From Cetorhinus maximus (taxonomy: Eukaryota): 64,000 nucleotides of DNA. The DNA lies in assembly GCF_964194155.1 (NCBI RefSeq), contig NC_135892.1, forward strand, positions 110,174,001 to 110,238,000, written 5' to 3'. Below, piece after piece: positions 34,301 through 63,023 of the stretch. A program made the translations under genes and the position numbers. The notes under the pieces were generated by a model. That model was not told the origin of the DNA, made no database searches, and worked only from the letters and a program-made list of their open reading frames with translations. Numbering within the stretch: position 1 is the first letter of the stretch; every line of letters begins with the position of its first letter.

Positions 34301-34559
34301 TCCCCATGTTGTATCTGACTCTCACAAGGAGCATTGTTCCGGCAGTTCTGAGTCATATTGTCAATTTATAGTGTTTTGCTGCTTGCTTATTTACACATGG
34401 GTCTGTATGGGCACTCCTCAGAGTTTGATAGCCATATGAAAGTTGATATTAATCTATGATTCATCTGGGCCAGTTCCAATTTGGGGCTCACTGTGTATTT
34501 AAATGTACAACACTGTCTTGTTTCCATGCCACACATTAGTTCAGGTTTCTGGAACCATC

Positions 34560-36532: not shown

Positions 36533-36601
36533 CCACTACGCCACTAACCCCGACGACCATCAGACCCACCTACTGTTCTACCCCAGGTTCTGGATGTCAA
36601 G
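36533..36601 (+). CDS. ADGRG6: Linker exon with Cys loop (ATTPLTPTTIRPTYCSTPGSGCQ; 69 nt, phase 1-1), equivalent to GPR126 exon 5
   Basis: Branch-like tactaat (36503-36509), pyrimidine tract, cacag| acceptor and CAAG|gtaggg donor. It has 23 codons ending C-x3-G-x2-CQ, like the human linker CADLGTLCQ (recalled). Confidence 0.85.
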
Positions 36602-38009: not shown

Positions 38010-38760
38010 AGAATCTTGACACCATCCAGGACAAAGCAGCCCGCTTGATGGGCACTCCATCCACCACCTTAAACATTCACTCCCTTCGCCACCGACGCAC
38101 AGTGACAGCAGTGTGTACCATAATGCATTTTTTCCAATACTGGAGGGATCAATAACCAGGGGTCATAGATTTAAGGTAAGAGGTAGAAGGCTAAGAGGGG
38201 AGTTGAGGAGAATTTTTTTTCACCCAGAGGGTGGTGGGAGTCTGGAACTCTCTGCCTGAAAGGGTGGTTGAGTCAGAAATTCTTGTAACGTTTAAGAAGT
38301 ATTTAGATATTCACTTGCGTTGCCATAGCCTCCAGGGCTATAGGCCAAGTGCTGGAAAATGGGATTAGTGTAGTCAGATCTTTGTTGACCAACAAGGACA
38401 TGATGGGCTGAATGGCCTCCTTCTGCGCTGTAAACATCTAAGAGCCATCTACAAGATGCACTGCAGCAATTCACCAAGGCTCCTTCAACATCACCTCCCA
38501 AACCCATGATCTCTACCACCTAGAAGGACAAGGGAACATCTCCAAGCCGCACACACCATCCTGAACTATATCGCTGTCCCTTCACTGTCGCTGGGCCATC
38601 CTTGAACTCCCTCCCTAACAGCACTGTGGGCGGACCTACACCACATGGACTGCAGTGGTTTAAGAGGATGGCTCACCACCACCTTCTCAGTGGCCATTAG
38701 GGATGGGTGACGTTAATTGCCAGCTTCGTTCACATCCCGTGAACAAATAAAAAAAAATAT
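38010..38760 (+). mobile_element. LINE 3' fragment interrupted by a nested CR1 3' fragment (38122-38444)
   Basis: The host sequence gtgtgtaccat…ccatctacaagatgc is split and 'ccat' is duplicated. The insert carries the CR1-type cagagggtggtg…tggaactctctgcc and gggctgaatggcctcc tail. Confidence 0.8.
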
Positions 38761-39899
38761 ATGTAGTTGGAACAAACTAACAAAAAAGGCAATCTCGCTC
38801 GGCCATCTAAGAAGTAAATTAAGCCTGCTATAGGTGTGAATGAGGAGCCTACACCGGTTTAAGGTCCCGTTGCAGAAATGGGTTAAGGTTGTGTGGAACT
38901 GACCAAGCCCACACCACTCAGCATTCTTAAGTGATCCATAATGCAAACACGACAGTGAGAGCTTAGTCTGAGGTGAGGCAAGTTGCCTGACGCGCCTCTT
39001 ATGAAAACACGTGAGTCATTTATGGAGGCACCGGCAATTTGTGATAAAGCTGTAACCGAGGCCCCAGGCCGGTCGGACATTGGGTAGCGCCCGCTTTCTG
39101 GGTGCTGACCCATCTCCACCCCAACCAGCACCTTTCAGGAGAGGGGGAGGGGGGGAAAAGGGGAAGAAGAGCAGCAAGTTCAAAATTAAAACCAGTTAAT
39201 TGTTGGCCAAACTTGAGTGGCTCTCTCACCAACACCCTGCCTTAACCCTCTCTGCCTTAGCAGCCTTCCCAGTGAGTAGCACAGGCTGAGGTAGTTCATT
39301 TGTTAAAACCCTAGCCTCTTTATGTTGTAGTTTCCCCTTTGATCGCATTTATGTGAGGGCATTGTGCGTGCACGCATTGTCAGGCAGCCAGCTTACAGCC
39401 TTTTTTTTTGTGCGAACGATTAATGGTTTGAACTGGTCGACATGTCAGAGGAGGGTGTAGAGTCCAGTGGGCCAACAGGATCACGGAGCTTGTTGACATT
39501 CTGTCACCAAAAAAGACGCGATAGAAAAGCTGGGACATGAACTGCGGAGGCTGCTGGAGGGATATGCCGACAAAGGTTTGTGTAATCAGGGCAGTTGTAT
39601 GTCATTCGCTATCGATACGGATTCATCTTGAAATTCTGTGTAATTGTCACTCGTGACGTGCATCCGTAATCCATTCCTGGGATCTGGCTCGCAGCCACAA
39701 AACAGGAAGCAGACCACCTGGATCACTGGAAATATGCCAGAAGCTTAAAACACTTGCTGCTGATTGTCGTCGGCTCCTGCGAAGCATCTCCTTGGCTCTC
39801 CTTTAGATTGACTTAAAATGTAACTCTAGTCCCAGAGATCCTGGTAGAGACCCTTGCCCCTTGGCAGTAGCCCTGCTTTGCAAACGAACCTGCACAACA

Positions 39900-40265
39900 A
39901 CACCAACGCTCATTTTATATAGCACCTTTAATGCAATAAAACATCCCAAAGCCTTTCACAGGAGCGTTCCCAAGCAAAATTTGACAACCGAGCCACATAA
40001 GGAGACTTTTGCACAAGTGTCCTGAAGCTTGATCAAGTGTGGATTTTAAGGAGTGAAAAGGAGGAGAGAGTGGTAGAGAGATTTAAGGAGTGAATTCCAG
40101 AGCTTAGGGCTCAGGCAGCTGAAGACTCGGCTGTTAATCATATGGAAGGATTAAAATCCGGGATGCTCAAAAGGACAGATTTGGAGGATAACAGAGATCC
40201 TGGAGGTTTGCGGGGTTGGGGGAGAACCCGGAGACAGGGAGGGGCAAGGCCAAGGAGAGATTGAG
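39900..40265 (-). mobile_element. L2-type LINE 3' end, antisense (related pieces ~3780-4110, ~16610-17135, ~19250-19400, ~20145-20330)
   Basis: Recurrent tttatatagcacctttaa…catcccaaag…ggagagagtggtagagagattta…gaattccagagcttaggg motif. Confidence 0.55.
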
Positions 40266-41579
40266 GAGGTTTGAATTGGGTCCACTACATTTTCCTAGAT
40301 GTACCAAATACTACTAGTATGTGATGAGTGTTCCAGTTGACTCAGGGAGTCCAAGTTGCTTTTACATGCGTGTTATAGCCTGGAGCTATGGATAGTGGTG
40401 GTAGAGGCTCCAATGTACTTTCCATCACGTGGCTGACCAGGAATCTCTCCCACTTTTACCACTGGCCATTGGCAGGATTTGCAGGTGATTACTCAATGTG
40501 GTTGGTGGTATTACATGGCCATCAATCCCTGGGATGGATCTTGAACACAGGGCTTCTGGCTCAGAGACAGGGACATTGCCCACTGCACCACAAGACCAAG
40601 CTAGTATGTGACACCACTGCTTCCAAACAGAAATAAATGAATGAAGGGATATGACTCACACGGTTGCCATGATGACTGTAAATTTTATTCTTGCACCATG
40701 GGCAAGGCTAGTATTTATTTTCCATCCTGAGTTACCATTTGAAGAGGTGGTGGCGGGCTGTCTTCTTGAGCAGTTTGAGACAACTCATGCGGCCACTTCA
40801 GGGGGCCAGTTAAGAATTAAATGCGTTAGTATGGGACTGGAGTCACCTATCGGTCAAACTGGGTAAGGACGGCAGGTTTCCTTCCCTGAAGGATGTTACC
40901 TTTAGCGGAACCAGTGAGAGTGGGAAAGCGTGAGGGTGGGTGGAAGGAACAATAGCTGGAAGCTGATTGGACTCCCTATGAGGTGCTCTTCATCCCAACT
41001 ACTCCATATGATAGCGAGTTCCACTGGTAGTGGCTACAGTGCTGGACTGCTGACCCAGGGGTTGAAGTTCAGACCCTGTCCTGATAACTTGTGCCCTATG
41101 GGCGAATCCTAGAAATATGCCGGATTGTTTTAACAACCCCGTTGGTTCATTCGTGTTCTTTTAAGAGCTCATCTTCAAACTATGCACTACAATCTTCAAA
41201 GTTCACCTCAGATGCCAGACACTGCCTGATTTTAATGTCATATTTAAGGAATGGTACCGCCAATATCGCAGCACTCCCTGACTACTGCACTGAAATGTCA
41301 GTTCAGATTATGTGCTGAAGTCTCCAATGTGGGATGTGAACATACAATCTTCCAAGGTCAGAGGGGAGACTGTCACCGCTGAGAGCCAAGGCTGACATGA
41401 GTCCCTTGCAATGGCAAAATCCATGAACTTTGCAAAATTACGCAAAACCCGTGGGCAAGGGAGGTATCATTCCTTTTAACGGTGTGGAGATTCAGTAACC
41501 GTGTGTGATGACTAACTCCTTTACCCTTCCTGAAATAACCTGCAGTTACCTGCATATTTCTTCCTTGTCTTGTTAACAG

Positions 41580-41654
41580 CTACCACATCAGCCCACTCCA
41601 GCACTAGCACCACTAACACGCTTGGCACTAACAGCCCTGAGCCCTTCACTTCTG
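41580..41654 (+). CDS. ADGRG6: Ser/Thr-rich cassette exon copy 1 (ATTSAHSSTSTTNTLGTNSPEPFTS), homolog of GPR126 alternatively spliced exon 6
   Basis: tttcttccttgtcttgttaacag| acceptor and TCTG|gtaagc donor; 75 nt, phase 1-1, no stop codon; AT...TTNxxxTN motif. Confidence 0.8.
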
Positions 41655-42572
41655 GTAAGCAAAGTGTGTTTGAATCATTCTATTCTTATTTTGTTACATT
41701 TCCAATTATCAATTACTATGTGCATAATTATAATGGAAAAAACGGATTCAGGGATGTCGTGATATAATTATACCCCCCCACCAGTAGTGGTGTTGCAGCT
41801 CCTCTGTTGGGAGAAGGTTAATCGCAATGTGATGTGTTTTTAAGATAATTCTCCTTATAGATGTGTACGTCGTTATTTGTGACAGAAAATGTTGAGAAAA
41901 AGCCTACACAGGTGTTGAAAATTAAGAACAATTTGCAAAATACCATATTAGAATAATCTCTGGCAGAAAGAATATATTAAATCCAACCGTGCGGTGGTAT
42001 ATTCTGAAATATTGTTTGCTACATGATATGATACAGTAACGTATGGGATATTATGGATCAGAATGGTATAGTATAGTGTGTGTAGTGTAATATATAACAG
42101 TTTGCAATATGCAATTATAGCATATTCTAATACATACATACATACTCACTCACTAACTTACTCGCGCACTCTGGCATGGACTAGATGGGCCTAATGGCTT
42201 CCATCTGTGCCATATTGAATCTATGAATTTATATTATAGTATGTGGGATGTAGTCTATCATGACGGAATGGGTTTCATATATGGTTGAGTGTACAGAGGA
42301 TCTTCTAAATTCACCTCAGATGCCAGACACTGCCTGATTTTAATGTCATATTTAAGGAATGGTACCGTCAACAATGCAGCACTCCCTGACTACTGCACTG
42401 CAGTGTCAGTTCAGATTATGTGCTGAAGTCTCCAATGTGGGATGTGAACATACAACCTTCCAAGGTCAGAGGGGAGACTGTCACCGCTCAGAGCCAAGGC
42501 TGATATGAGTCCTTTACCCTACCTGAAATAACCTGCAGTTACCTGCATATTTCTTCCTTGTCTTGTTAACAG

Positions 42573-42647
42573 CTACCACATCAGCCCACTCCAGCACTAG
42601 CACCACTAACACGCTTGGCACTAACAGCCCTGAGCCCTTCACTTCTG
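42573..42647 (+). CDS. ADGRG6: Ser/Thr-rich cassette exon copy 2 (identical to copy 1)
   Basis: Identical 75-nt exon with intact AG/GT splice sites. Confidence 0.75.
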
Positions 42648-43566
42648 GTAAGCAAAGTGTGTTTGAATCATTCTATTCTTATTTTGTTACATTTCCAATT
42701 ATCAATTACTATGTGCATAATTATAATGGAAAAAACTGATTCAGGGATGTCGTGATGTAATTATACCCCCCCCACCAGTAGTGGTGTTGCAGCTCCTCTG
42801 TTGGGAGAAGGTTAATCGCAATGTGATGTGTTTTTAAGATAATTCTCCTTATAGATGTGTACGTCGTTGTTTGTGACAGAAAATGTTGAGAAAAAGCCTA
42901 CACAGGTGTTGAAAATTAAGAACAATTTGCAAAATACCATATTAGAATAATCTCTGGCAGAAAGAATATATTAAATCCAACCGTGCGGTGGTATATTCTG
43001 AAATATTGTTTGCTACATGATATGATACAGTAACGTATGGGATATTATGGAACAGAATGGTATAGTATAGTGTGTGTAGTGTAATATATAACAGTTTGCA
43101 ATATGCAATTATAGCATATTCTAATACATACATACATACTCACTCACTAACTTACTCGCGCACTCTGGCATGGACTAGATGGGCCTAATGGCTTCCATCT
43201 GTGCCATATTGAATCTATGAATTTATATTATAGTATGTGGGATGTAGTCTATCATGACGGAATGGGTTTCATATATGGTTGAGTGTACAGAGGATCTTCT
43301 AAATTCACCTCAGATGCCAGACACTGCCTGATTTTAATGTCATATTTAAGGAATGGTACCGTCAACAATGCAGCACTCCCTGACTACTGCACTGAAGTGT
43401 CAGTTCAGATTATGTGCTGAAGTCTCCAATGTGGGATGTGAACATACAACCTTCCAAGGTCAGAGGGGAGACTGTCACCGCTCAGAGCCAAGGCTGATAT
43501 GAGTCCTTTACCCTACCTGAAATAACCTGCAGTTACCTGCATATTTCTTCCTTGTCTTGTTAACAG

Positions 43567-43641
43567 CTACCACATCAGCCCACTCCAGCACTAGCACCAC
43601 TAACACGCTTGGCACTAACAGCCCTGAGCCCTTCACTTCTG
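43567..43641 (+). CDS. ADGRG6: Ser/Thr-rich cassette exon copy 3 (identical to copy 1)
   Basis: Identical 75-nt exon with intact AG/GT splice sites. Confidence 0.75.
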
Positions 43642-46600
43642 GTAAGCAAAGTGTGTTTGAATCATTCTATTCTTATTTTGTTACATTTCCAATTATCAAT
43701 TACTATGTGCATAATTATAATGGAAAAAACTGATTCAGGGATGTCGTGATATAATTATACCCCCCCACCAGTAGTGGTGTTGCAGCTCCTCTGTTGGGAG
43801 AAGGTTAATCACAATGTGACGTGTTTTTAAGATAATTCCCCTTATAGATGTGTACGTCGTTATTTGTGACAGAAAATGTTGAGAAAAAGCCTACACAGGT
43901 GTTGAAAATTAAGTATAATTTGCTATATACCATATTAGAATAATCTCTGGCAGAAAGAATATACTAAATCCAACCATGCGGTGGTATATTCTGAAATATT
44001 GTTTGCTATATGATATGATACAGTAAAGTATGGGATATTATGGAACAGAATGGTATAGTATGGTACTACAAGTGTGTAGTGTAAAATATAACAGTTTGCA
44101 ATATGCAATTATAGCATGTTGCAATAGATACATGCATACATACATACATACAAACTCACTCTGGCATGGACTAAATGGGCCTAATGGCTTCCATCTGTGC
44201 CATATTGAATCTATGACTTTATATTATAGTATGTGGGGTGTAGTATATCATGACGGAATGGATTTCATACATGGTTGAGTGTACAGAGGATTACAAAGGG
44301 GAGAATCTTCCCCGTCAAGGAGAGTTCAATCGCCTGAAATTGAGATCAGGTCTGGATCTTGATGCCAGCGTGCCCTCTACTGGGTTTCTCCCAGGTGGAT
44401 TCCGAGGATCTACCTTAGATCTGGTGGGTAACCAACTAAGACAATTAAAAAGGAAATTTGGAGTTCCTTTAATCCTGGATTCTGATGGTTCCAGCCTGGG
44501 CACCTTCTTTCCTGACCTGTCAGCCCCTTGCCAGGGCCACTGAGGCAAGTACACAGTGAGAAGAGCTTTATTTTCAGTGAAACTGATATGTTGGGAAGCC
44601 TTTTATCCTGGCCTGGTGAGAGGCCGCTTTTCAATGCACATCTTGGAGGGCGCCTGACCTGTCAGGAACTTCACTCCCTTTCAGCTGCACTCCTCTGCTT
44701 CCAGCCTTCACCATGACATGGGGGCAGCTTATGTACCTCCACCTCTCTGATGAGGGTCAATAGCAGAGGCCACATTAGCACCAACAGCGCGAGCAGGAGC
44801 ACTCGCTCTCAGCAGCACCTCCCCCAAAAGGGCAGAGGAGATAGACTCAGAAATTCAACTGGAAGGAGGCGGGTCCCCCACCGCCGAGTCTCCAGGTAGA
44901 AGATCAGATGTCTTGACCTGTCTGAACACCAGTCCCTCAGGAGGCTCAGCATCTCCTGTCAGGTCACTGCCTAGTGCAGCAGGTGGGCACATATTCCCAA
45001 TGGCCGGTAATGTGTCAGTCGCTGGAGGGCCACAAGTCACATCCCTGCCCACCCTCGGTGCCTGCCTCTCACCATGTTGTGTGCTCTCTTCTCCTGTAAG
45101 GAGAGAAAGCAGCGAGTTATGAGTGTTCATAATGGCTTGTGTGGGGAGGAGGGATGGACAGTGTTTGTGGAGGATGACGGTAATTCTGTGATACCCAATT
45201 CTGTTGAGAAGTTCCTTTTGAATCTGCTTCCACCGCCCTTTCAGGCAATGCATTCCAGGTCATAACAACTCTCAGAGTAAAAGAACTTCTCCTCATCGAC
45301 CTTCTGATCATTTTGGGTGATGCCCTTTGAGATTGTTTTGGACAACAAGCTTCCCCATAGAATCACATCTTTAATGAAAGTGACTGGAAAATGAGCACAG
45401 GTTTGCAGAAGTTGCTGCTTGTTCTGGTATCCTGGTAGCCAAGATTGATTAGTTCTGCCTCTCTACGTAATCTAATTAGTTTAAAAAAGAAACCCTCTAA
45501 AATGAAAGAGAAACTGTTGGAAGTGTTAGACAGCTGGATCAATATCTATATGGGGAGAAAGAAATCTTAGCAACTTAGATCTGACGCTTCATCAGAAGAT
45601 AAATCACCTCGCTGATGTGCCAGCTGGCATCTAAGACTGGTGAATTCTTTAGGAATATGCTTTATAAGAGCATGAGAAACAAGAGAAAGAGTAGGCCATA
45701 TAAGAGCAGGTCAGAATCTGGGAATTCTACGGTGAGTAACTCACCTCCTGAGTCCCCAAATCCTGTACCAACTACAAGCTACACATCAGGAGTGTGATGG
45801 AAGGCTCTCCACTTGCCTCGATGAGTGCAACACTCAAGCAGCTGGACACCACCCAGGACAAAGCAGCCCACTTGATTGGCACCCCATCCACGACCTTCAA
45901 CATTCACTCCCTCCTCCACAGCAGTATGTACCATCTGTAAGATGCACTGCAGCAACTCACCAAGGCTCCTTCGATAGCACCTTCCAAACTCTCAAACTCT
46001 ACCACCTAGAAGGACAAGGGCTGCAGATAGATGGGAAAACCACCACCTAAATTCCCCTCCAAGTCACTCACCATCCTGACTTGGAAATATATCGCCTTTC
46101 CTTCACTGTCACTGGGTCAAAATCCTGGAACTCCCTCCCTAACAGCAATGTGGGTGTACCTACGCCACATGGACTGCAGCGGTTCAAAAAGGCAGCTCAC
46201 CACCACCTTCTCAATGGCAGTTAGGGATTGGCAATACGTGCTGGTTGACCAATGACGCCCACATCCCTTGAACGAATATTTTAAAAAATTCTTGGAAATA
46301 TATCGCTATTCCTTCAGTGTCGCTGTATCAAAATCCGGGAACTTCCTTCCTAACAGCACTGTGGGAAATGGCTCACAACCACCACCTTCTCAAGGGCAAT
46401 TAAGGATGGGCAACAAATATTGGCCTCACCACAATGCCCAATTCGTGTGAAAGAATAAAATAAAATGGCCCCTCAAGCCTGCTCTGCCATTCCATTAGGT
46501 CGTTGGCTGATCTGATCTTGCCCTCAATTCCACTTTCCTGTCTGTTATCCAGGGTCCTTAAATTCTCTGTAGTTCAAAAATCTGTCCATCTCAGCCTTGA

Positions 46601-47954
46601 ACATGTTCAGTGACTCAGCCTCCACTGTTCTCTGGGTTAGAGAATTCCAGAATTGGGTCCACTACATTTTCCTAGATGTACCAAATACTACTAGTATGTG
46701 ATGAGTGTTCCGGTTCACTCAGGGAGTCCAAGTTGCTTTTACATGCGTGTTATAGCCTGGAGCTATGGATAGTGGTGGTAGAGGCTCCAATGTACTTTCC
46801 ATCACGTGGCTGACCAGGAATCTCTCCCACTTTTACCACTGGCCATTGGCAGGATTTGCAGGTGATTACTCAATGTGGTTGGTGGTATACATGGCCATCA
46901 ATCCCTGGGGTGGGTCTTGAACCCAGGGCTTCTGGCTCAGAGACAGGGACATTGCCCACTGCACCACAAGACCAAGCTAGTATGTGACACCACTGCTTCC
47001 AAACAGAAATAAATGAATGAAGGGATATGACTCACACGGTTGCCATGATGACTGTAAATTTTATTCTTGCACCATGGGCAAGGCTAGTATTTATTTTCCA
47101 TCCTGAGTTGCCATTTGAAGAGGTGGTGGCGGGCTGTCTTCTTGAGCAGTTTGAGACAACTCATGCGGCCACTTCAGGGGGCCAGTTAAGAATTAAATGC
47201 GTTAGTATGGGACTGGAGTCACCTATCGGTCAAACTGGGTAAGGACGGCAGGTTTCCTTCCCTGAAGGATGTTACCTTTAGCGGAACCAGTGAGAGTGGG
47301 AAAGCGTGAGGGTGGGTGGAAGGAACAATAGCTGGAAGCTGATTGGACTCCATATGAGATGCTCTTCATCTCAACTACTCCATATGATAGCGAGTTCCAC
47401 TGGTAGTGGCTACAGTGCTGGACTGCTGGCCCAGGGGTTAAAGTTCAAACCCTGTCCTGATAACTTGTGCCCTATGGGCGAATCCTAGAAATATGCCGGA
47501 TTGTTTTAACAACCCCGTTGGTTCATTCGTGTTCTTTACGCGCTCATCTTCAAACTATGCACTACGATCTTCTAAGTTCACCTCAGATGCCAGACACTGC
47601 CTGATTTTAATGTCATATTTAAGGAATGGTACCGCCAATATTGCAGCAATCCCTGACTACTGCACTGAAATGTCAGTTCAGATTATGTGCTGAAGTCTCC
47701 AATGTGGGATGTGAACATGCAACCTTCCAAGGTCAGAGGGGAGACTGTCACCGCTGAGAGCCAAGGCTGACATGAGTCCCTTGCAATGGCAAAATCCATG
47801 AACTTTGCAAAATTATACAAAACCCGTGGGCAAGGGAGGTATCATTCCTTTTAACGGTGTGGAGATTCAGTAACCGTGTGTGATGACTAACTCCTTTACC
47901 CTACCTGAAATAACCTGCAGTTACCTGCATATTTCTTCCTTGTCTTGTTAACAG

Positions 47955-48029
47955 CTACCACATCAGCCCACTCCAGCACTAGCACCACTAACACGCATGG
48001 CACTAACAGCCCTGAGCCCTTCACTTATG
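47955..48029 (+). CDS. ADGRG6: Ser/Thr-rich cassette exon copy 4 (ATTSAHSSTSTTNTHGTNSPEPFTY; L>H, S>Y)
   Basis: 75 nt with intact splice sites (TATG|gtaagc) and two substitutions, CTT>CAT and TCT>TAT. Confidence 0.72.
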
Positions 48030-48992
48030 GTAAGCAAAGTGTGTTTGAATCATTCTATTCTCATTTTGTTACATTTCCAATTATCAATTACTATGTGCAT
48101 AATTATAATGGAAAAAACTGATTCAGGGATGTCGTGATGTAATTATACCCCCCCACTAGTAGTGGTGTTGCAGCTCCTCTGTTGGGAGAAGGTTAATCAC
48201 AATGTGACGTGTTTTTAAGATAATTCCCCTTATAAATGTGTACGTCGTTATTTGTGTCAGAAAATATTGAGAAAAAGCCTACACAGGTGTTGAAAATTAA
48301 GAACAATTTGCAATATACCATATTAGAATAATCTCTGGCAGATAGAATATATTAAATCCAACCATGCGGTGGTATATTCTGAAATACTGTTTGCTATATG
48401 ACATGATACAGTAAAGTATGGTATATTAGGGAACAGAATGGCATAGTTTGATACTACAAGTGTGTAGTGTAATATTTAACAGTTTGCTATATGCAATTAT
48501 AGCATGTTGACATACATACATACATACATACACTCACTCACTCACTCACTCACTCACTCACTCACTCACTCACTCACTCACTCACTCACTCTGGCATGGA
48601 CTAGATGGTCCTAATGGCTTCCATCTGTGCCATATTGAATCTATGACTTTATATTATAGTATGTGGGGTGTAGTCTATCATGACGGAATGGGTTTCATAT
48701 ATGGTTGAGTGTACAGAGGATCTTCTAAATTCACCTCAGATGCCAGACACTGCCTGATTTTAATGTCATATTTAAGGAGTGGTACCGCCAACAACGCAGC
48801 ACTCCCTGACTACTGCACTGAAATGTCCGTTCAGATTATGTGCTGAAGTCTCCAGTGTGGGATGTGAACATACAACCTTCCAAGGTCAGAGGGGAGACTG
48901 TCACCGCTGAGAGTCAAGGCTGACATGAGTCCTTTACCCTACCTGAAATAACCTGCAGTTACCTGCATATTTCTTCCTTGTCTTGTTAACAG

Positions 48993-49067
48993 CTACCACA
49001 TCAGCCCACTCCAGCACTAGCACCACTAACACGCTTGGCACTAACAACCCTGAGCCCTTCACTTCTG
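48993..49067 (+). CDS. ADGRG6: Ser/Thr-rich cassette exon copy 5 (…GTNNPEPFTS; S>N)
   Basis: 75 nt with intact splice sites and one substitution, AGC>AAC. Confidence 0.75.
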
Positions 49068-52000
49068 GTAAGCAAAGTGTGTTTGAATCATTCTATTCTT
49101 ATTTTGTTACATTTCCAATTATCAATTACCATGTGCATAATTATAATGGAAAAAGCTGATTCTGGGGTGTCGTGATATAATTATATCCTCCGACCAGTAG
49201 TGGTGTTGCAGTTCCTCTGTTGGGAGAAGGTTAATCGCAATGTGACGTGTTTTTAAGATAATTCCCCTTATAGATGTGTACGTCGTTATTTGTGACAGAA
49301 AATGTTGAGAAAAAGCTTACACAGGTGTTGAAAATTAAGAATAAGTTGCAATATACCATATTAGAATAATCTCTGGTAGAAAGAATATATTAAATCCAAC
49401 CATGCGGTGGTATATTCTGAAATATTGTTTGCTATATGATATATAGTAAAGTATGGTATATTATGGAACAGAATGGTATAGTATGGTACTACAAGTGTGT
49501 AGTGTAATATATAACAGTTTGCAATATGCAATTATAGCATGTTGCAATAGATACATGCATACATACATACATACAATCTCACTCTGGCATGAGTTAGATG
49601 GGCCTAATGGCTTCCATCTGTGCCATATTGAATCTATGACTTTATATTATAGTATGTGGGGTGTAGTATATCATGATGGAATGGATTTCATATATGGTTG
49701 AGTGTAGAGAGGATTACAAAGGGGAGAATCTTCCCCGTCAAGGAGAGTTCAATCGCCAGAAATTGACATCAGGTCTGGTTCTTGACGCCAGCCTGCCCTC
49801 TACTGGGTTTCTCCCAGGTGGATTCCGAGGATCTACCTTAGATCTGGTGGGAAACCAACTAAGACAATTAAAAAGGAAATTTGGAGTTCCTTTAATCCTG
49901 GATTCTGATGGTTCCAGCCTGGGCACCTTCTTTCCTGACCTGTCAGCACCTTGCCAGGGCCACTGAGGCAAGTACACAGTGAGAAGAGCTTTATTTTCAG
50001 TGAAACTGATATGTTGGGAAGCCTTTTATCCTGGCCTGGTGAGAGGCCGCTTTTCAATGCACATCTTGGAGGGCGCCTGACCTGTCAGGAACTTCACTCC
50101 CTTTCAGCTGCACTCCTCTGCTTCCAGCCTTCACCATGACATGTGGGCAGATTATGTACCTCCACCTCTCTGATGAGGGTCAATAGCAGAGGCCACATTA
50201 GCACCAACAGCGCGAGCAGGAGCACTCGCTCTCAGCAGCACCTCCCCCAAAAGGGCAGAGGAGATAGACTCAGAAATTCAACTGGAAGGAGGCGGGTCCC
50301 CCACCGCCGAGTCTCCAGGTAGAAGATCAGATGTCTTGACCTGTCTGAACACCAGTCCCTCAGGAGGCTCAGCATCTCCTGTCAGGTCACTGCCCAGTGC
50401 AGCAGGTGGGCACATATTCCCAATGGCCGGTAAGGTGCCAGTCACTGGAGGGCCACAACTCACATCGCTGCCCACCCTCGGTGCCTGCCTCTCACCATGT
50501 TGTGTGCTCTCTTCTCCTGTAAGGAGAGAAAGCAGCGAGTTATGAGTGTTCATAATGGCTTGTGTGGGGAGGAGGGATGGACAGTGTTTGTGGGGGATGA
50601 CGGTAATTCTGTGATACCCAATTCTGTTGAGAAGTTCCTTTTGAATCTGCTTCCACCACCATTTCAGGCAATGCATTCCAGGTCATAACAACTCTCAGAG
50701 TAAAAGAACTTCTCCTCATCGACCTTCTGATCATTTTGGGTGAAGCCCTTTGAGATTGTTTTGGACAACAAGCTTCCCCATAGAATCACATCTTTAATGA
50801 AAGTGACTGGAAAATGAGCACAGGTTTGCAGAAGTTGCTGCTTGTTCTGGTATCCTGGTAGCCAAGATTGATTAGTTCTGTCTCTCTACGTAATCTAAGA
50901 TTAGTTTATAAAAGAAACCCTCTAAAATGAAAGAGAAACTGTTGGAAGTGTTAGACAGCTGGATCAATATCTATATGGGAAAAAATAAATCTTAGCAACT
51001 TAGATCTGACGCTTCATCAGAAGATAAATCACCTTGCTGACGTGCCAGCTGGCATCTAAGACTGGTGAATTCTTTAGGAATATGCTTTATAAGAGCATGA
51101 GAAACAAGAGAAAGAGTAGGCCATATAAGAGCAGGTCAGAATCTGGGAATTCTACGGTGAGTAACTCACCCCCTGACTCCCTAAAGCCTGTACCAACTAC
51201 AAGCTACAAGTCAGGAGTGTGATGGAAGGCTCTCCACTTGCCTCGATGAGTGCAACATTCAAGCAGCTGGACACCACCCAGGACAAAGCAGCCCACTTGA
51301 TTGGCCCCATATCCACGACCTTCAACATTCACTTCCTCCTCCAAAGCAGTGTGTACCATCTATAAGATGCACTGCAGCAACTCACCAAGGCTCCTTCGAT
51401 AGCACCTTCCAAACTCACAAACTCTACCACCTAGAAGGACAAGGGCTGCAGATAGATGGGAACACCACCACCTAAATTCCCCTCCAAGTCACTCACCATC
51501 CTGACTTGGAAATATATCGCCGTTCCTTCACTGTCACTGGGTCAAAATCCTGGAACTCCCTCCCTAACAGCACTGTGGGTGCATCTACACCACACGGGTT
51601 GTAGCGGTTCAAGAGAGCAGCTCACCACCACCTTCTTAAGAGCAGTTAGGGATGGGCAATAAATGCTGGTTGACCAATGACGCCCACATCCCATGAACGA
51701 ATATTTTAAAAAATTCTTGGAAATATATCGCTATTCCTTAAGTGTCGCTGTATCAAAATCCGGGAACTTCCTTCCTAACAGCACTGTGGGAAATGGCTCA
51801 CCACCAGCACCTTCTCAAGGGCAATTAAGGATGGGCAACAAATATTGGCCTCACCACAATGTCCAATTCGTGTGAAAGAATAAAATAAAATGGCCCCTCA
51901 AGCCTGCTCTGCCATTCCATTGGGTCGTTGGCTGATCTGATCTTGCCCTCAATTCCACTTTCCTGTCTGTTATCCAGGGTCCTTAAATTCTCTGTAGTTC

Positions 52001-53379
52001 AAAAATCTGTCCATCTCAGCCTTGAACATGTTCAGTGACTCAGCCTCCACTGTTCTCTGGGTTAGAGAATTCCAGAATTGGGTCCATTACATTTTCCTAG
52101 ATGTACCAAATACTACTAGTATGTGATGAGTGTTCCAGTTCACTTAGGGAGTCCAAGATGCTTTTACATGCATGTTATAGCCTGGAGCTATGGACAGTGG
52201 TGGTAGAGGCTCCAATGTACTTTCCATCACGTGGCTGACCAGGAACCTCTCCCACTTTTACCACTGGCCATTGGCAGGATTTGCAGGTGTTTACTCAATG
52301 TGTTTGGTGGTATTACATGGCCATCAGGCTCTGAGGTGGGTCTTGAACCCAGGGCTTCTGGCTCAGAGACAGGGACATTGCCCACTGCACCTCGAGACCA
52401 CCCTAGTATGTGACACCACTGCTTCCAAACAGAAATAAATGAATGAAGGGATATGACTCACACGGGTGCCATGATGACTGTAAATTTTATTCTTGCACCA
52501 TGGGCAAGGCTAGTATTTATTTTCCATCCTGAGTTGCCATTTGAAGAGGTGGTGGCGGGCTGTCTTCTTGAGCAGTTTGAGACAACTCATGTGGCCACTT
52601 CAGGGGGCCAGTTAAGAATTAAATGAGTTAGTATGGGACTGGAGTCACCTATCGGTCAAACTGGGTAAGGACGGCAGGTTTCCTTCCCTGAAGGATGTTA
52701 CCTTTAGCGGAACCAGTGAGAGTGGGAAAGCGTGAGGGTGGGTGGAAGGAACAATAGCTGGAAGCTGATTGGACTCCATATGAGATGCTCTTCATCTCAA
52801 CTACTCCATATGATAGCGAGTTCCACTGGTAGTGGCTACAGTGCTGGACTGCTGACCCAGGGGTTGAAGTTCAAACCCTGTCCTGATAACTTGTGCCCTA
52901 TGGGCGAATCCTAGAAATATGCCGGATTGTTTTAACAACCCCTTTAGTCATTCGTGTTCTTTACGCGCTCATCTTCAAACTATGCACTACGATCTTCTAA
53001 GTTCACCTCAGATGCCAGACACTGCCTGATTTTAATGTCATATTTAAGGAATGGTACCGCCAGTATCGCAGCACTCCCTGACTACTGCACTGAAATGTCA
53101 GTTCAGATTATGTGCTGAAGTCTCCAATGTGGGATGTGAACATGCAACCTTCCAAGGTCAGAGGGGAGACTGTCACCGCTGAGAGCCAAGGCTGACATGA
53201 GTCCCTTGCAATGGCAAAATCCATGAACTTTGCAAAATTATGCAAAACCCGTGGGCAAGGGAGGTATCATTCCTTTTAACGGTGTGGAGATTCAGTAACC
53301 GTGTGTGATGACTAACTCCTTTACCCTACCTGAAATAACCTGCAGTTACCTGCATATTTCTTCCTTGTCTTGTTAACAG

Positions 53380-53454
53380 CTACCACATCAGCCCACTCCA
53401 GCACTAGCACCACTAACACGCTTGGCACTAACAGCCCTGAGCCCTTCACTTCTG
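53380..53454 (+). CDS. ADGRG6: Ser/Thr-rich cassette exon copy 6 (identical to copy 1)
   Basis: Identical 75-nt exon with intact AG/GT splice sites. Confidence 0.75.
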
Positions 53455-54392
53455 GTAAGCAAAGTGTGTTTGAATCAATCTATTCTTATTTCGTTACATT
53501 TCCAATTATCAATTACTATGTGCATAATCATAATGGAAAAAACGGATTCAGGGATGTCGTGATGTAATTATACCCCCCCACCAGTAGTGGTGTTGCAGCT
53601 CCTCTGTTGGGAGAAGGTTAATCGCAACGTGACGTGTTTTTAAGATAATTCTCCTTATAGATGTGTACGTCGTTATTTGTGACAGAAAATGTTGAGAAAA
53701 AGCCTACACAGGTGTTGAAAATTAAGAACAATTTGCAAAATACCATGTTAGAATAATCTCTGGCAGAAAGAATATATTAAATCCAACCATGCGGTGGTAT
53801 ATTATGAAATATTGTTTGCTACATGATATGATACAGTAACGTATGGGATATTATGGAACAGAATGGCATAGTATAGTGTGTGTAGTGTAATATATAACAG
53901 TTTGCAATATGCAATTATAGCATGTTCTAATACATACATACGTACTCACTCACTCACTCACTCACTCACTCACTCACTCACTCACTCACTCAGGCATGGA
54001 CAAGATGGGCCTAATGGCTTCCATCTGTGCCATATTGAATCTATGACTTTATATTATAGTATGTGGGGTGTAGTCTATCATGATGGAATGGATTTCATAT
54101 ATGGTTGAGTGTACAGAGGATCTTCTAAATTCACCTCAGATGCCAGACACTGCCTGATTTTAATGTCATATTTAAGGAATGGTACCGCCAACAATGCAGC
54201 ACTCCCTGACTGCTGCACTGAAATGTCAGTTCAGATTATGTGCTGAAGTCTCCAATGTGGGATGTGAACATACAACCTTCCAAGGTCAGAGGGGAGACTG
54301 TCACCGCTGAGAGCCAAGGCTGACATGAGTCCTTTACCCTACCTGAAATAACCTGCAGTTACCTGCATATTTCTTCCTTGTCTTGTTAACAG

Positions 54393-54467
54393 CTACCACA
54401 TCAGCCCACTCCAGCATTAGCACCACTAACACGCTTGGCACTAACAGCCCTGAGCCCTTCACTTCTG
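54393..54467 (+). CDS. ADGRG6: Ser/Thr-rich cassette exon copy 7 (ATTSAHSSISTT…; T>I)
   Basis: 75 nt with intact splice sites and one substitution, ACT>ATT. Confidence 0.75.
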
Positions 54468-55387
54468 GTAAGCAAAGTGTGTTTGAATCATTCTATTCTT
54501 ATTTTGTTACATTTCCAATTAACAATTACTATGTGCATAATTATAATGGAAAAAACTGATTCAGGGATGTTGTGATGTAATTATACCCCCCCCACCAGTA
54601 GTGGTGTTGCAGTTCCTCTGTTGGGAGAAGGTTAATCGCAATGTGACGTGTTTTTAAGATAATTCTCCTTACAGATGTGTACGTCGTTATTTGTGTCAGA
54701 AAATGTTGAGAAAAAGCCTACACAGGTGTTGAAAATTAAGAACAATTTGCAAAATACCATGTTAGAATAATCTCTGGCAGAAAGAATATATTAAATCCAA
54801 CCATGCGGTGGTATATTCTGAAATATTGTTTGCTATATGATATGATACAGTAAAGTATGGGATATTATGGAACAGAATGGTATAGTATAGCCTGTGTAGT
54901 GTAATATATAACAGTTTGCAATATGCAATTATAGCATGTTCTAATACATACATACATACTCACTCACTAACTTACTCGCTCACTTTGGCATGGACTTGAT
55001 GGGTCTAATGGCTTCCATTTGTGCCATATTGAATCTATGACTTTATATTATAGTATGTGGGGTGTAGTCTATCATGACGGAATGGGTTTCATATATGGCT
55101 GAGTGTACAGAGGATCTTCTAAATTCATTTCAGATGCCAGACACTGCCTGATTTTAATGTCATATATTAAGGAATGGTACCGCCAACAATGCAGCACTCC
55201 CTGACTACTGCACTGAAGTGTCAGTTCAGATTATGTGCTGAAGTCTCCAATGTGGGATGTGAACATACAACCTTCCAAGGTCAGAGGGGAGACTGTCACC
55301 GCTGAGAGCCAAGGCTGACATGAGTCCTTTACCCTACCTGAAATAACCTGCAGTTACCTGCATATTTCTTCCTTGTCTTGTTAACAG

Positions 55388-55462
55388 CTACCACATCAGC
55401 CCACTCCAGCACTAGCACCACTAACACGCTTGGCACTAACAGCCCTGAGCCCTTCACTTCTG
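55388..55462 (+). CDS. ADGRG6: Ser/Thr-rich cassette exon copy 8 (identical to copy 1)
   Basis: Identical 75-nt exon with intact AG/GT splice sites. Confidence 0.75.
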
Positions 55463-58400
55463 GTAAGCAAAGTGTGTTTGAATCATTCTATTATTTTGTT
55501 ACATTTCCAATTATCAAATACTATGTGCATAATTATAATGGAAAAAATGGATTCAGGGATGTCGTGATGTAATTATACCCCCCCACTAGTAGTGGTGTTG
55601 CAGCTCCTCTGTTGGGAGAAGGTTAATCACAATGTGACGTGTTTTTAAGATAATTCCCCTTATAGATGTGTACGTCGTTATTTGTGACAGAAAATGTTGA
55701 GAAAAAACCTACACAGGTGTTGAAAATTAAGAATAATTTGCAATATACCATATTAGAATAATCTCTGGTAGAATGAATATATTAAATCCAACCATGCGGT
55801 GGTATATTCTGAAATATTGTTTGATATATGACATGAAACATTAAAGTATGGTATATTATGGAACAGAATGGTATAGTATGGTACTTCAAGTGTGTAGTGT
55901 AAAATATAACAGTTTGCAATATGCAATTATAGCATGTTGCAATAGATACATGCATACATACCTACAAACTCACTCTGGCATGGACTAAATGGGCCTAATG
56001 GCTTCCATCTGTGCCATATCGAATCTATGACTTTATATTATAGTATGTGGGGTGTAGTATATCATGACGGAATGGATTTCATATATGGTTGAGTGTAGAG
56101 AGGATTACAAAGTGGAGAATCTTCCCCGTCAAGGAGAGTTCAATTGCCAGAAATTGACATCAGGTCTGGGTCTTGATGCCAGCCTGCCCTCTACTGGGTT
56201 TCTCCCAGGTGGATTCCGAGGATCTACCTTAGTTCTGGTGGGAAACCAACTAAGACAATTAAAAAGGAAATTTGGAGTTCCTTTAATCCTGGATTCTGAT
56301 GGTTCCAGCCTGGGCACCTTCTTTCCTGACCTGTCAGCACCTTGCTAGGGCCACTGAGGCAAGTACACAGTGAGAAGAGCTTTATTTTCAGTGAAACTGA
56401 TAGGTTGGGAAGCCTTTTATCCTGGCCTGGTGAGAGGCTGCTTTTCAATGCACATTTTGGAGGGCGCCTGACCTGTCAGGAACTTCACTCCCTTTCAGCT
56501 GCATTCCTCTGCTTCCAGCCTTCACCATGACATGGGGGCAGCTTATGCACCTCCACCTCTCTGATGAGGGTCAATAGCAGAGGCCACATTAGCACCAACA
56601 GCGCGAGCAGGAGCACTCGCTCTCAGCAGCACCTCCCCCAAAAGGGCAGAGGAGATAGACTCAGAAATTCAACTGGAAGGAGGCGGGTCCCCCACCGCCG
56701 AGTCTCCAGGTAGAAGATCAGATGTCTTGACCTGTCTGAACACCAGTCCCTCAGGAGGCTCAGCATCTCCTGTCAGGTCACTGCCCAGTGCAGCAGGTGG
56801 GCACATATTCCCAATGGCCGGTAAGGTGCCAGTCACAGGAGGGCCACAACTCTCATCGCTGCCCACCCTCGGTGCCTGCCTCTCACCATGTTGTTTGCTC
56901 TCTTCTCCTGTAAGGAGAAGAAGCAGCGAGTTATGAGTGTTCATAATGGCTTGTGTGGGGAGGAGGGAAGGACAGTGTTTGTGGAGGATGACGGTAATTC
57001 TGTGATACCCAATTCTGTTGAGAAGTTCCTTTTGAATCTGCTTCCACCACCCTTTCAGGCAATGCATTCCAGGTCATAACTCTCAGCGTAAACGAACTTC
57101 TCCTCATCGACCCTCTGACCCTTTTGGGTGAAGCCCTTTGAGATTGTTTTGTACAAGAAGCTTCCCCATAGAATCACATCTTTAATGAAAGTGACTGGAA
57201 AATGAGCACAGGTTTGCAGAAGTTGCTGCTTGTTCTGGTATTCTGGTAGCCAAGATTGATTAGTTCTGTCTCTCTACGTAATCTAAGATTAGTTTATAAA
57301 AGAAACCCTCTAAAATGAAAGAGAAACTGTTGGAAGTGTTAGACAGCTGGATCAATATCTATATGGGAACAAAGAAATCTTAGCAACTTAGATCTGACGC
57401 TTCATCAGAAGATAAATCACCTCGCTGATGTGCCAGCTGGCATCTAAGACTGGTGAATTCTTTAGGAATATGCTTTATAAGAGCATGAGAAACAAGAGAA
57501 AGAGTAGGCCATATAAGAGCAGGTCAGAATCTGGGAATTCTACGGTGAGTAACTCACCTCCTGACTCCCCAAAGCCTGTACCAACTACAAGCTACAAGTC
57601 AGGAGTGTGATGGAAGGCTCTCCACTTGCCTCGATGAGTGCAATACTCAAGCTGCTGGACACCATCCAGGACAAAGCAGCCCACTTGATTGGCCCCATTT
57701 CCACGACCTTCAACATTCACTCCCTCCTCCACAGCAGTTTGTACCATCTATAAGATGCACTGCAGCAACTCACCAAGGCTCCTTCGATAACACGTTCCAA
57801 ACCCACAAACTCTACCACCTAGAAGGACAAGGGCTGCAGATAGATGGGAACACCACCACCTAAATTCCCCTCCAAGTCACTCACCATCCTGACTTGGAAA
57901 TATATCGCTATTCCTTCACTGTCGCTGTATCAAAATCCGGGAACTCCCTCCCTAACAGCACTGTGGGTGTACCTACAGCACATTGTCTGCAGCGGTTTAA
58001 GTAAATGACTCACCACCACCACCTTCTCAAGGGCAATTAAGGATGGGCAACAAATATTGGCCTCACCACAATGCCCACTTCGTGTGAAAGAATAAAATAA
58101 AATGGCCCCTCAAGCCTGCTGTGCCATTCCATTGGGTCGTTGGCTGATCTGATCTTGCCCTCAATTCCACTTTCCTGTCTGTTATCCAGGGTCCTTAAAT
58201 TCTCTGTAGTTCAAAAATCTGTCCATCTCAGCCTTGAACATGATCAGTGACTCAGCCTCCACTGTTCTCTGGGTTAGAGAAATCCAGAGTTTCATGAGCC
58301 TCTGAGTGAAGAAATCCCTGCTCGTCTCCATCTTAAATGCATGACCCCATTATTCTGAAAGAATGCCCCCTGGTTCTAGATTTCTCCCATTCCAGATCCC

Positions 58401-60075: not shown

Positions 60076-63023
60076 TAAACAATAATAGAATGATATGGCA
60101 CTGAAGGAGGCCATTTGGTCCATCATGCCTGTGCTAGTTCTTTGAAAAAGTGGTTAAGTAGTTGCACTCCCTTGATCTTTCCCCATGTCCTGCAATTTTT
60201 TCTCATTCAAGTATTTGTCAAATTCCTTTTGGAAAGTTTATTATTCAATCTGCTTCCAAAACCCTTTCGGGCAGTGCAGTCCAGGTCATGGCATCCTGTG
60301 GCAAAACTTTATTTTTCGTTGATTTGGATGTCCAAGAAACTTCATCACAATCCTGCGATTGCTTCGTGCTGACAAGACTGTAACTGTACTGAGTGACAGA
60401 TCTGAAACAGACCCTTTCAAGTCTGGACCAGGGTCAAGCATGGCTGTGTGATAGCCCCCATATTCTTTGCAACCTACCTGACAGCAGCTATTCACCTCAT
60501 TGGAGATCAACTGCCCTAGATGGAAAACTCTTTAACCTCAGCCGTCTCTGTGCCAAAACTAAACTGACCACCATAAGTACATGTAAGATCATAAGAAATA
60601 GGAGCAGGAGTGGGCCATTCGGCCCATCAATCCTGCTCTGCCATTCAGTAAGATCACGGCTGATCTGTTGGATGAGTTGGTCAGGTGCTGGCGGGCGAGG
60701 AACTTACAGGTTTACGGTCAAAGACTGGGGAAGTGGAACTGAGCACAACTTCTCTTTCAAAGAGCCACCATAGGCACGATGAGTTGAAGAGCCTCTTTCT
60801 GTGCTGTACGTTTCTACAATTGGATGATTCTGACAGGCTTTTTCAGGACTGAAAGACATCTCTTTACTGCAATACTGCTGGTGTGAATGATTGTATTTGT
60901 TGAGTACTCCCCGGCAGAATGAAAGGAAGGATTCTTTCCTCTTGGCTCCAGTTCTCCACTAGCCAATGACCCAGTGAGTAGGGAGGGTCCCAGCTGGACA
61001 AGCAATGCTGCTAATCTGCAGGGTTTTATCTGGTTTTAAAAACTCCAGGAGTATCTGCTTCAGGGAATTCGCTATTCGTGACCCTGTCACTTTCCACCTA
61101 AGCTCTCTGGAATTAAATAAGCGTGGCATGTCCCCTACAGGGACAGAAAGCAGACTTGTATCACAGACAAACAGAAATGCTGAACGTGAGGACTTTTTGG
61201 GTCATTGCATCTGGAGACTGCTTAACACATTAAGAGGTCTCCCTTGCATTTCAGACTCTTTAAAGAAAAGAACCATCTAGATTTTGAGCAGGTGGTTCTG
61301 TTTTTTTTTTGTTATTGTCCGCCGGGGTAGTCCATGCGTTTTTGCTCATCGCTTGCTTTATGTGAACCATGTCATGCTTCCTTGCCACCTGTTCCCACAA
61401 TGTGCAAGATCATGGGTCAAAGGTCAAAATTGGACTGTCTCACGAGCTGGCAACAGCTAACCATTGGCAGTGCACATCAGAAAATAATTCGTAACCACAT
61501 TGCAGAGATTGAAAATATTTAATGTTATTGAATAAATATCATCTTCACAAGGGAGCCATGCACTGCAATCATGGCCACATGGATACACGATGACAGTCCT
61601 TTGCTCCGCAGAGGCCCTAGAATTAGTGCTAAGTGTGCAGTTTTTTTTTAAGCCATGTGATCAATATCTTGCATTTGCTTACATCACAAAGGCACACATC
61701 TTCCATTCACGGAAGTCACAACGCAAGGAGCCAGAGAACCCACAGAGTTGAGTAAGACACTGGATTTTAAAATTTTAATGACTAATTGGTAGATGCGAAT
61801 AAATGTATGATCCCATCATTGAGAGATTGGCCACATAGTTCCTTCGCAAGTCTCTTCCAGCATCCCAGTCCTGTAAAAGGACTTGCAATTATGTCGTGCC
61901 TTTCACAGCCTCAATTAATTGCTTCGGCTGGACGGGCCGAATGGTCTACTCCTGTTCCGATTTCTTATGTTCTCAATAGTGTAGTGATTATTGTAATGCA
62001 CAAAATGTGCCAACCAATTTGCACACAGCAAGCTCTCACAAACAGTATTGTGTTGATGACCAGGTAATCTGTTATCGTGGTGCTGGGTCAAATAATAGCT
62101 AGAACACCAAGGATAACCTAATCCAATCCTTTTCAAAATAGTGGATCTTTTATGCTCACCTGAGGGACACAGTCTAATGTCTCATCTGAAAGATAACACC
62201 TCCCACAGTGCAGTACACCATCAGGGCTACACTGGAGTCTTTGCCTAGGCTTTGTGTTGAAGCATCTGGAGTGGGACTTGAACCCACAACCTTCTGCCTC
62301 AGAGGTAAGCACGCTACCAACTGAGCCAAGGATGACGCTCATGGAGGCCACGACTGATAGCAATGCCTCCGGGTCGATTGGTAACTTTTCCACGGAAAGC
62401 GGGAGGAAGCAAAGACTCTTAGCGGTTGAGGTAGCTCCTGAGGGGACATAGCTGAAAATGGAAGACTGGCATTGATCCTGCCCTCTGGAGCAGACTTACC
62501 AGTCTGAATGGCACTCTGAAGCCAGCTCAGAGTGCTACAGGGCACTATTGATGATTGACCATCCAGCCCACTTATTAATGGGACTTGGAGAGGGGGGTGT
62601 ACCATTGGAGGGGCTGGGATTCTTCCTGCTAATTTCCAGGAAACCAGCTTCCCAATGAGTAGCACAGACCCAGCTATGAGCAGAAGGATGCATCCCAATG
62701 ATGATTGCCTCTAAACTACGGCCTTTTACCTGGTGAAGCCCCGGCAGTAACCCTACGCCCACCTCCGGGTTCCACTGGCTTACCTGCTGCCAACCTGTTA
62801 AGCCTTTAAGGAATGTTGGTAGTCGGGAGTCCATCTGGGCAGGGAGTGTGCACTCTCTATTGGGCAAGCAAATGTTCAATGTAGATGGACTTCTCAATAG
62901 TTTGGCTCCGTCGCTGTTTGGTGACAGGTTTTTGTGAGACTCCCGGTGGCCAGAAACCCAAAGGAAAATGTTGACAGCGGATCCTGATGACTGAGTGCCG
63001 TAACCGGTGTTTTTATTATTCAG

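Follow-up and report, generated by a model that had tools for sequence, protein, structure and literature searches.

The stretch of DNA described here, a window of 64,000 nucleotides (nt) from the basking shark Cetorhinus maximus (NCBI RefSeq assembly GCF_964194155.1, contig NC_135892.1, positions 110,174,001 to 110,238,000 of the forward strand), carries the 5' part of ADGRG6 (GPR126), which encodes an adhesion G-protein-coupled receptor (GPCR). Within the gene stands an array of eight nearly identical small exons, hereafter cassettes c1 to c8, all on the + strand. All eight were located by acceptor count, alignment and blastn. Five are canonical (c1, 41580-41654; c2, 42573-42647; c3, 43567-43641; c6, 53380-53454; c8, 55388-55462) and three are variant; in the RefSeq protein introduced below, the variant peptide of c4 (47955-48029) is the fourth cassette, and c5 (48993-49067) and c7 (54393-54467) are absent. 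The ten-base acceptor TTGTTAACAG has exactly eight matches across the 64 kb, always on the + strand and always ending one base before a cassette start, with a chance expectation of 0.20 and eight occurrences reached in 0 of 100 shuffles. The donor G|gtaagc follows all eight cassettes, each of which is 75 nt long, free of stop codons and of phase 1-1 when read in the frame of its neighbouring exons. An earlier reading of the sequence alone (the original prediction) had proposed eight exons at these starts with the same acceptor, donor, phase and open frame, and the acceptor matches and exon alignment confirm it on each point. Since every copy has the same splice sites and frame, any subset of cassettes would also stay in frame, as had been claimed. 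A relaxed blastn search of the window with the exon gave no degenerate ninth cassette, the remaining matches being chance matches of 10-13 nt.

The cassette peptide is (A)TTSAHSSTSTTNTLGTNSPEPFTS, whose 25 residues include the 14 Ser/Thr of the original prediction and 2 Pro. Ser, Thr or Pro thus make up 16 of 25 residues, and six cassettes stand in series in the RefSeq protein, which is the pattern of a mucin-like tandem repeat. When the eight exons were aligned with 40 nt upstream and 26 nt downstream (141 columns), five columns varied, four of them exonic and one in the downstream flank. Five of the eight copies are identical; the private changes are L>H and S>Y in c4, S>N in c5 and T>I in c7, so that the copy-specific differences foreseen for copies 4, 5 and 7 are indeed there. 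A second open frame, LPHQPTPALAPLTRLALTALSPSLL, also runs through the cassette at 41580-41654 and through its copies; as the flanking phase-1 exons fix the ATTSAH frame, this second one is probably a by-product of the low-complexity composition.

The identity of the gene was approached by searching the exons of the window singly, with none joined. The stretch 21287-21802 matches the Pfam CUB domain (PF00431, E = 1.5e-27) and the stretch 26184-26912 the Pentaxin domain (PF00354, E = 1.2e-11). Among solved structures, the ectodomain of zebrafish ADGRG6 (6v55_A, 1.2e-32) is closest to the pentraxin (PTX) exon, against 1.2e-07 for ADGRG4 and about 1e-06 for neuronal pentraxins, and a HMMER scan with the same exon and a follow-up search have named ADGRG6 proteins of many cartilaginous fishes among their matches. 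RefSeq also holds an adhesion G-protein coupled receptor G6 of Cetorhinus maximus itself (XP_078413604.1, P0248 in our protein set). Its identity to the window is 33/33 residues in exon 1, 115/116 in CUB, 207/208 in PTX and 21/21 in the cassette B described below, both mismatches (CUB and PTX) falling at split boundary codons. On this sequence evidence, the window is basking-shark ADGRG6, or indistinguishable from ADGRG6 at the compared exons; the two domains, the structural match and the identity to the RefSeq protein vindicate the gene assignment of the original prediction.

Reading the exon boundaries also established the signal, CUB, PTX and Cys-loop exons that had been announced upstream of the array, all on the + strand. 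The coding part of exon 1 (14326-14425, 100 nt, with the start codon and signal region) ends in phase 1, and is followed by the CUB exon (21453-21797, 345 nt), the PTX exon (26290-26907, 618 nt) and a Cys-loop linker exon (36533-36601, 69 nt, ATTPLTPTTIRPTYCSTPGSGCQ, the same peptide as in the RefSeq protein), each of phase 1-1. The loop, C-STPGSG-C, has six residues between its cysteines, as in all sharks read except Heptranchias (four); five are given for zebrafish ADGRG6 in passages of Leon et al. 2020 (PMC6954182). The Pfam search returned no match for the linker exon or for a cassette read with its flanks. The earlier exon list was incomplete downstream, where two further phase 1-1 cassettes on the + strand follow the array before the window ends: cassette B, (G)THLPFTEVTTQGAREPTEL(S), 61692-61751, 60 nt, and cassette C, (S)LQTTTLPQNSNCNSSNSE, 63024-63080, 57 nt, the peptide of the latter also being found in the RefSeq protein. 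Conversely, the SEA exon that the original prediction named falls outside the window. The RefSeq protein runs on into SEA-to-seven-transmembrane (7TM) sequence like other orthologues (the cluster representative, P0133, lists PF01825 and PF00002). The SEA, HormR, GAIN/GPS and 7TM parts of the basking-shark gene lie beyond the window end, with that protein as their only proxy.

The cassette appears to be the counterpart of a known exon. Passages of PMC6954182 give the order of ADGRG6 after PTX as a 22-residue linker with a disulfide-stabilised loop, the alternatively spliced exon 6 and SEA, and describe exon 6 as S/T-rich, with 23 residues in zebrafish and 28 in human. The shark cassette is the first exon after the Cys-loop linker exon, both in the window and in the RefSeq protein, and its 25 residues lie within that range. 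The inserts of three tetrapods (the gecko Paroedura, the cat Leopardus and the bilby Macrotis) start with AT and contain TTNMP[DV]TN; the shark cassette starts with AT and contains TTNTLGTN, so that AT...TTNxxxTN is common to both, a likeness seen by eye in a peptide too short for statistics. Position, size, composition and motif support the orthology of the cassette with exon 6, and the position after the Cys loop together with the shared motif upholds the proposal that it is the known S/T-rich splice exon. In the parts of PMC6954182 and PMC12684940 (Kordon et al. 2025) that concern it, the exon 6 '+ss' insert of zebrafish and human shares with the cassette its gene, its slot, its S/T-richness and a similar size. 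The two differ in that exon 6 is a single copy, with a predicted N-glycosylation site in the zebrafish insert according to PMC6954182, whereas the basking-shark cassette stands in eight copies, is followed by B and C, and has neither of these two traits of the '+ss' insert.

Self-comparison of the window shows how the copies are arranged. The cassettes sit in units of about 1 kb that are nested within a larger repeat: 40273-46234 and 52075-58050, which hold three cassettes apiece, are 96.2% identical over 5991 nt, 40273-42171 and 46650-48555 are 96.4% identical, and 43138-49714 and 48564-55115 are 96.0% identical. The locus divides into blocks I, II and III (6.4, 5.4 and about 6.0 kb), each made of a head, a set of units and a tail of about 3.4 kb, with a cassette layout of 3+2+3. 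Block I (40273-46649) holds c1-c3 and a repeat insertion in its tail, block II (46650-52074) holds c4-c5 and block III (52075-58050) holds c6-c8. In MAFFT alignments, the upstream flanks of c1, c4 and c6, the first units of their blocks, cluster at 97.7-99.0% identity; the downstream flanks of c1, c2, c6 and c7, which have another unit next to them, cluster together, and those of c3, c5 and c8, the last in their blocks, cluster apart. These groupings by unit position fit the block model. Between units, the introns are 91.7-99.6% identical, and variable columns number 4/75 in the exon, 1/63 in the upstream 150 nt and 93/641 in the distal intron, the exon being less variable than the distal intron (Fisher p = 0.03). 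The low variability of the exon and splice region fits constraint on the splicing signals or local gene conversion, and is no demonstration of selection on the peptide.

Other repeats accompany the units and blocks. A (CATA)n/(CTCA)n microsatellite is present in each unit of about 1 kb (42130-42170, 48510-48560, 53930-53970 and equivalents), and its length, which differs between units, explains much of the 991-1038 nt variation in cassette spacing. A reverse-transcriptase fragment lies in the intron between CUB and PTX (24518-24994, + strand, Pfam RVT_1, 6.8e-22), and open stretches resembling it are found at 25235-25741, 34503-35336, 45603-46252, 51028-51659 and 57416-57860; in the Pfam scan of intronic open stretches, one of seven (24518-24994) matched a family. 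As the retroelement-like tail recurs in the tail of every block, the element was presumably in the block before its triplication.

The copy number was then compared with four genomic sequencing runs (X1-X4) of one sample, probably the assembled individual, whose contigs cover the intron at 38679-39943 without difference. Depth was referred to this kind of neighbouring single-copy intron for a contig over cassette c1 and for a head contig running from 40864/40870 to 41231, the head being present three times in the assembly. The single-copy depth of run X1 is 10.2, with 78.1 for the cassette contig (41517-41716; ratio 7.7) and 24.8 for the head (ratio 2.4). The corresponding values are 74.8, 329.1 (41362-41716; ratio 4.4) and 193.8 (ratio 2.6) for X2; 60.7, 290.3 (41517-41988; ratio 4.8) and 175 (ratio 2.9) for X3; and 8.7, 43.6 (41517-41743; ratio 5.0) and 17.5 (ratio 2.0) for X4. 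Contig depth is not a copy number, longer contigs averaging over copy-specific words, and ratios of 4.4-7.7 for the cassette and 2.0-2.9 for the head are consistent with eight and three copies without being a count. The raised depth called for as a check by the original prediction is thus present in all four runs. The private letters of c4, c5 and c7 do not appear among the alternative letters of the X1-X4 contigs, but as contigs drop minor variants, this absence carries no weight.

An assembly-inflated copy number, by false tandem duplication or by stacking of haplotypes over a locus with fewer cassettes, has been largely rejected on copy divergence and read depth. It could draw on the six rather than eight cassettes of the RefSeq protein, on the general proneness of tandem repeats to assembly errors and on the probable origin of the genomic reads from the assembled individual. 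Against it, the blocks diverge by about 4% and the units by up to 8%, far beyond haplotype copies or assembly echoes, several copies have private exonic changes, the depth ratios are in line with eight and three copies, and the related species Carcharodon independently has five cassettes. Given the divergence of 4-8%, the private changes, the depth and the five-copy sister species, inflation is the weakest of the three rivals considered here, and we regard it as very improbable. Against the single falsely duplicated copy by which the original prediction said it could be overturned stand the 1-8% divergence of the unit introns and the raised depth.

Public gene models place the array in a wider context. 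The models of 16 cartilaginous-fish species were read, mostly with one isoform per species; 3 of the 124 proteins of the first PTX-exon search were sampled, together with the named cartilaginous-fish models and three tetrapods among the best 120 of 185. The RefSeq protein of Cetorhinus has six cassettes in series, in the order of three canonical copies, the c4 variant and two canonical copies. Laid on the window, this order leaves c1, c2, c3, c4, c6 and c8 as the only possible set. The model therefore skips exactly c5 (S>N) and c7 (T>I) and keeps c4 with its two changes, despite identical splice sites in all eight; the omission may stem from the underlying evidence, from the predictor or from the use of another assembly. 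In Carcharodon carcharias there are five cassettes, with 23-25 of 25 residues identical to the canonical copy of the window, and isoforms X1-X11 carry 5, 5, 5, 4, 3, 5, 4, 2, 2, 1 and 0 of them. The Carcharodon copies have diverged among themselves (SAH/TVH; PEPF/SELF/PELF), unlike those of the basking shark, which are almost uniform. Cassettes B and C are present or absent independently in the same models, B being skipped in X2, X3, X4, X7 and X11 and C in X3 and X7. The skate Rhinoraja longicauda has two cassettes in series, and its isoforms X1-X6 carry 2, 2, 1, 0, 2 and 2. A single cassette is found in the models of Amblyraja, Leucoraja, Pristis, Narcine, Mobula, Hemitrygon, Heterodontus, Heptranchias, Scyliorhinus torazame, Rhincodon, Chiloscyllium and Mustelus, and none in that of Callorhinchus.

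Judging from these sequences, the array is a lamniform feature that public annotation already contains, and the skate Rhinoraja has a two-copy case of independent origin. The RefSeq models of Carcharodon and Cetorhinus contain the same array as automatic models, undescribed in print, and the window shows two copies beyond the Cetorhinus model. The claim that such an array had not been described stands in so far as no description of a cassette array or exon duplication in ADGRG6 or adhesion GPCRs was found in the open-access literature searched; it fails in so far as six cassettes are already in the RefSeq protein. The linker region has seen different exons duplicated in different elasmobranch lineages. 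In Mustelus asterias, isoform X5 (P0141, from a cluster of 20 member sequences) has one cassette and, twice over, a pair of exons like B and C. The Rhinoraja and Mustelus cases are small duplications that arose independently among the optional linker exons of this part of the gene; they differ from the basking shark in comprising two copies only, and in Mustelus in concerning a different exon pair.

Taken together, these data favour the reading, to which we give a probability of roughly 0.65, that exon 6 was multiplied by segmental duplication and that several cassettes are spliced serially in numbers varying between transcripts. A unit of about 1 kb would have been copied within a block, and the block of 5.4-6.4 kb would have come to stand three times, giving 3+2+3 = 8 exons. 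With serial splicing, each cassette would set the CUB-PTX head a further 25 residues away from the SEA-HormR-GAIN-7TM body. Transcripts would carry several cassettes in differing counts, which we infer by comparison with the Carcharodon models (0-5 of 5) and the Rhinoraja models (0-2 of 2), annotated isoforms with and without the cassette existing in both species and mixing and matching copies. Splice tuning of the cassette number in the basking shark itself would follow by the same inference. Mutually exclusive splicing of the duplicates, another candidate, was rejected on the models of Cetorhinus (the RefSeq protein) and Carcharodon, which string several copies together.

The first cassette would act as the known switch, any inclusion being expected to release the closed CUB-HormR state, which is the effect of the single insert in zebrafish, and further cassettes would mainly lengthen the stalk. 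Mucin-like peptides extend by roughly 0.25 nm per residue; at this value the stalk would gain about 6 nm per cassette and about 50 nm for all eight. The spacer is probably disordered and O-glycosylated. In passages of PMC6954182 and PMC12684940, the zebrafish '+ss' insert shifts the ectodomain from closed CUB-on-HormR to open-like forms, and basal cyclic AMP (cAMP) is about 10-fold over vector with it, against about 5-fold without. How the cassette count would act on the shape of the ectodomain or on signalling is an extrapolation from this single insert to a series of up to eight. The stalk of 0-200 residues in 25-residue steps put forward in the original prediction is right as to frame-neutral copies and incomplete as to length, B (20 residues) and C (19 residues) being skipped independently in Carcharodon models. 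A stronger form of the idea, in which the lamniform binary '+ss' switch has turned into an exon-level counter setting a glycosylated stalk of 0 to about 240 residues in steps of about 20-25 residues, in a tissue- or stage-specific manner, and so grading basal cAMP, ligand reach or the transmission of force, is doubtful, perhaps one chance in several. If it were true, the skate and Mustelus duplications would suggest that selection has repeatedly favoured a longer, adjustable stalk in elasmobranchs.

Several results weigh against serial splicing in varying numbers. Among the sequencing runs matching the PTX exon for the basking shark, none is recorded as RNA, and no exon-exon joint of ADGRG6 was seen among 15 of the 270 joints in the genomic contigs of X1-X4. 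A search for transcript-derived protein fragments of a 268-residue piece of the RefSeq protein (linker to SEA start), among proteins of 0.55-1.75 times its length, gave none at E <= 1e-5 among 113 candidates, an outcome that is blank rather than negative. The only model for Cetorhinus is a single isoform with six cassettes, the model read has one cassette in 12 of the 16 species, and the Carcharodon isoforms are automatic models, in which short spliced reads may have been misplaced among near-identical 75-nt exons and have produced false skipping patterns. All four exonic differences between the basking-shark cassettes are non-synonymous, which gives no sign of purifying selection on the cassette peptide, and no N-x-S/T sequon is found inside or across the cassettes, unlike in the zebrafish insert. 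No biological correlate of cassette number is obvious among the 16 species; a link to gigantism was set aside, the whale shark (Rhincodon), a giant, having one cassette.

The array may also be real and its use essentially fixed, most or all cassettes being constitutive or the whole set being in or out without a graded series, which would yield one long form of the stalk and perhaps a skipped form beside it. This is unlikely in our view, less so than any other rival. The sole public Cetorhinus model is one isoform with six cassettes in series, identical strong-looking splice sites in 8/8 copies favour inclusion of all, and the intermediate Carcharodon counts could stem from ambiguous read placement. 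Yet the Cetorhinus model already omits two of the eight genomic copies, the Carcharodon cassettes are distinct enough to name subsets, such as #2+#5 or #4+#5, the Rhinoraja models carry 0, 1 and 2 cassettes, and the ancestral single exon is itself optional, as passages of PMC6954182 state. Slightly less probable again is that only one or a few copies of a real array act as exons, the others being silent pseudo-exons left by neutral duplication and the multi-cassette models prediction artefacts. The lack of RNA evidence among the runs matching the PTX exon and the four non-synonymous changes out of four would agree with this, and automatic predictors readily chain in-frame open exons with good splice sites. 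Silent copies would sit less well with an exon and upstream splice region (4/75 and 1/63 columns) less variable than the distal intron (93/641), with splice sites and open frames that are intact in every copy at about 4-8% intron divergence, or with the 11 models of the sister lamniform Carcharodon, which use up to five. With serial splicing, the number of cassettes used may be regulated, or the locus may be an exon-level variable number of tandem repeats (VNTR) that the receptor simply tolerates.

What has happened in this gene is the expansion of a known optional exon into an additive exon array, the sequences of which are already in RefSeq models. The copies appear additive rather than mutually exclusive; tandem exon duplication leads to this less often. 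ADGRG6 controls myelination and inner-ear and heart development, and how strongly it signals hinges on the opening of the ectodomain by one small insert. A naturally occurring series of 0 to 8 inserts would offer a test of how the length of a linker and the size of a glycosylated stalk affect the conformation, ligand reach and mechanical activation of an adhesion GPCR. As to annotation, six of the eight exons, all equally competent, figure in the present public model, and short reads cannot count identical cassettes.

Comparable systems are known in unrelated genes. Exons 4-6 (A, B, C) of CD45/PTPRC are small in-frame cassettes for an O-glycosylated spacer, whose combinatorial inclusion sets stalk length; they are not recent identical duplicates, and their regulation is demonstrated. 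The PEVK exons of titin form a tandem array in which inclusion sets the length of a molecular spring; there too regulation is demonstrated, but the protein is intracellular, while the basking-shark array encodes an extracellular stalk. In mucin-type VNTR stalks such as those of GPIb-alpha, PSGL-1 and MUC1, tandem S/T/P-rich repeats form a glycosylated stalk and repeat number sets its reach. Their repeats lie within one exon and vary between alleles; basking-shark ADGRG6 has one repeat per exon, so that a single allele could give transcripts with different repeat numbers.

Some minor observations concern the gene and its relatives. The window contains two runs of N, at 27421-27845 (425 bases) and 63718-63917 (200 bases), and a long (TG/CA)-rich microsatellite (about 27100-27420) directly precedes the first. 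In humans, ADGRG6 is a locus for height and scoliosis. An exon 6 scoliosis variant is cited in Leon et al. 2020, in a passage of PMC6954182. Rhinoraja isoform X6 (P0258) is without the CUB exon, like the delta-CUB variant of the zebrafish ADGRG6 constructs presented in parts of PMC12684940, and such a splice variant may be ancient. Seven ADGRG6-like representatives reach 2083-2374 residues (P0002, P0003, P0011, P0025, P0026, P0028 and P0030). In two of them, P0002 and P0003, about 1100 residues are inserted after the linker cassettes and ahead of SEA; the insert resembles a giant optional exon of non-mammalian ADGRG6, which here would fall beyond the window end.

A last observation touches the cassette donor. 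After the cassette, all eight copies read G|gtaagcaaagtgtg (41655-41670 and equivalents). The Heterodontus model (P0135) reads ...PFTS-GKQS-TNVPF, in which GKQ is the translation of the first nine intron bases, gtaagcaaa; this fits a GT donor nine bases further downstream, and it is possible that such a +9 alternative donor is usable in the basking-shark cassettes too.

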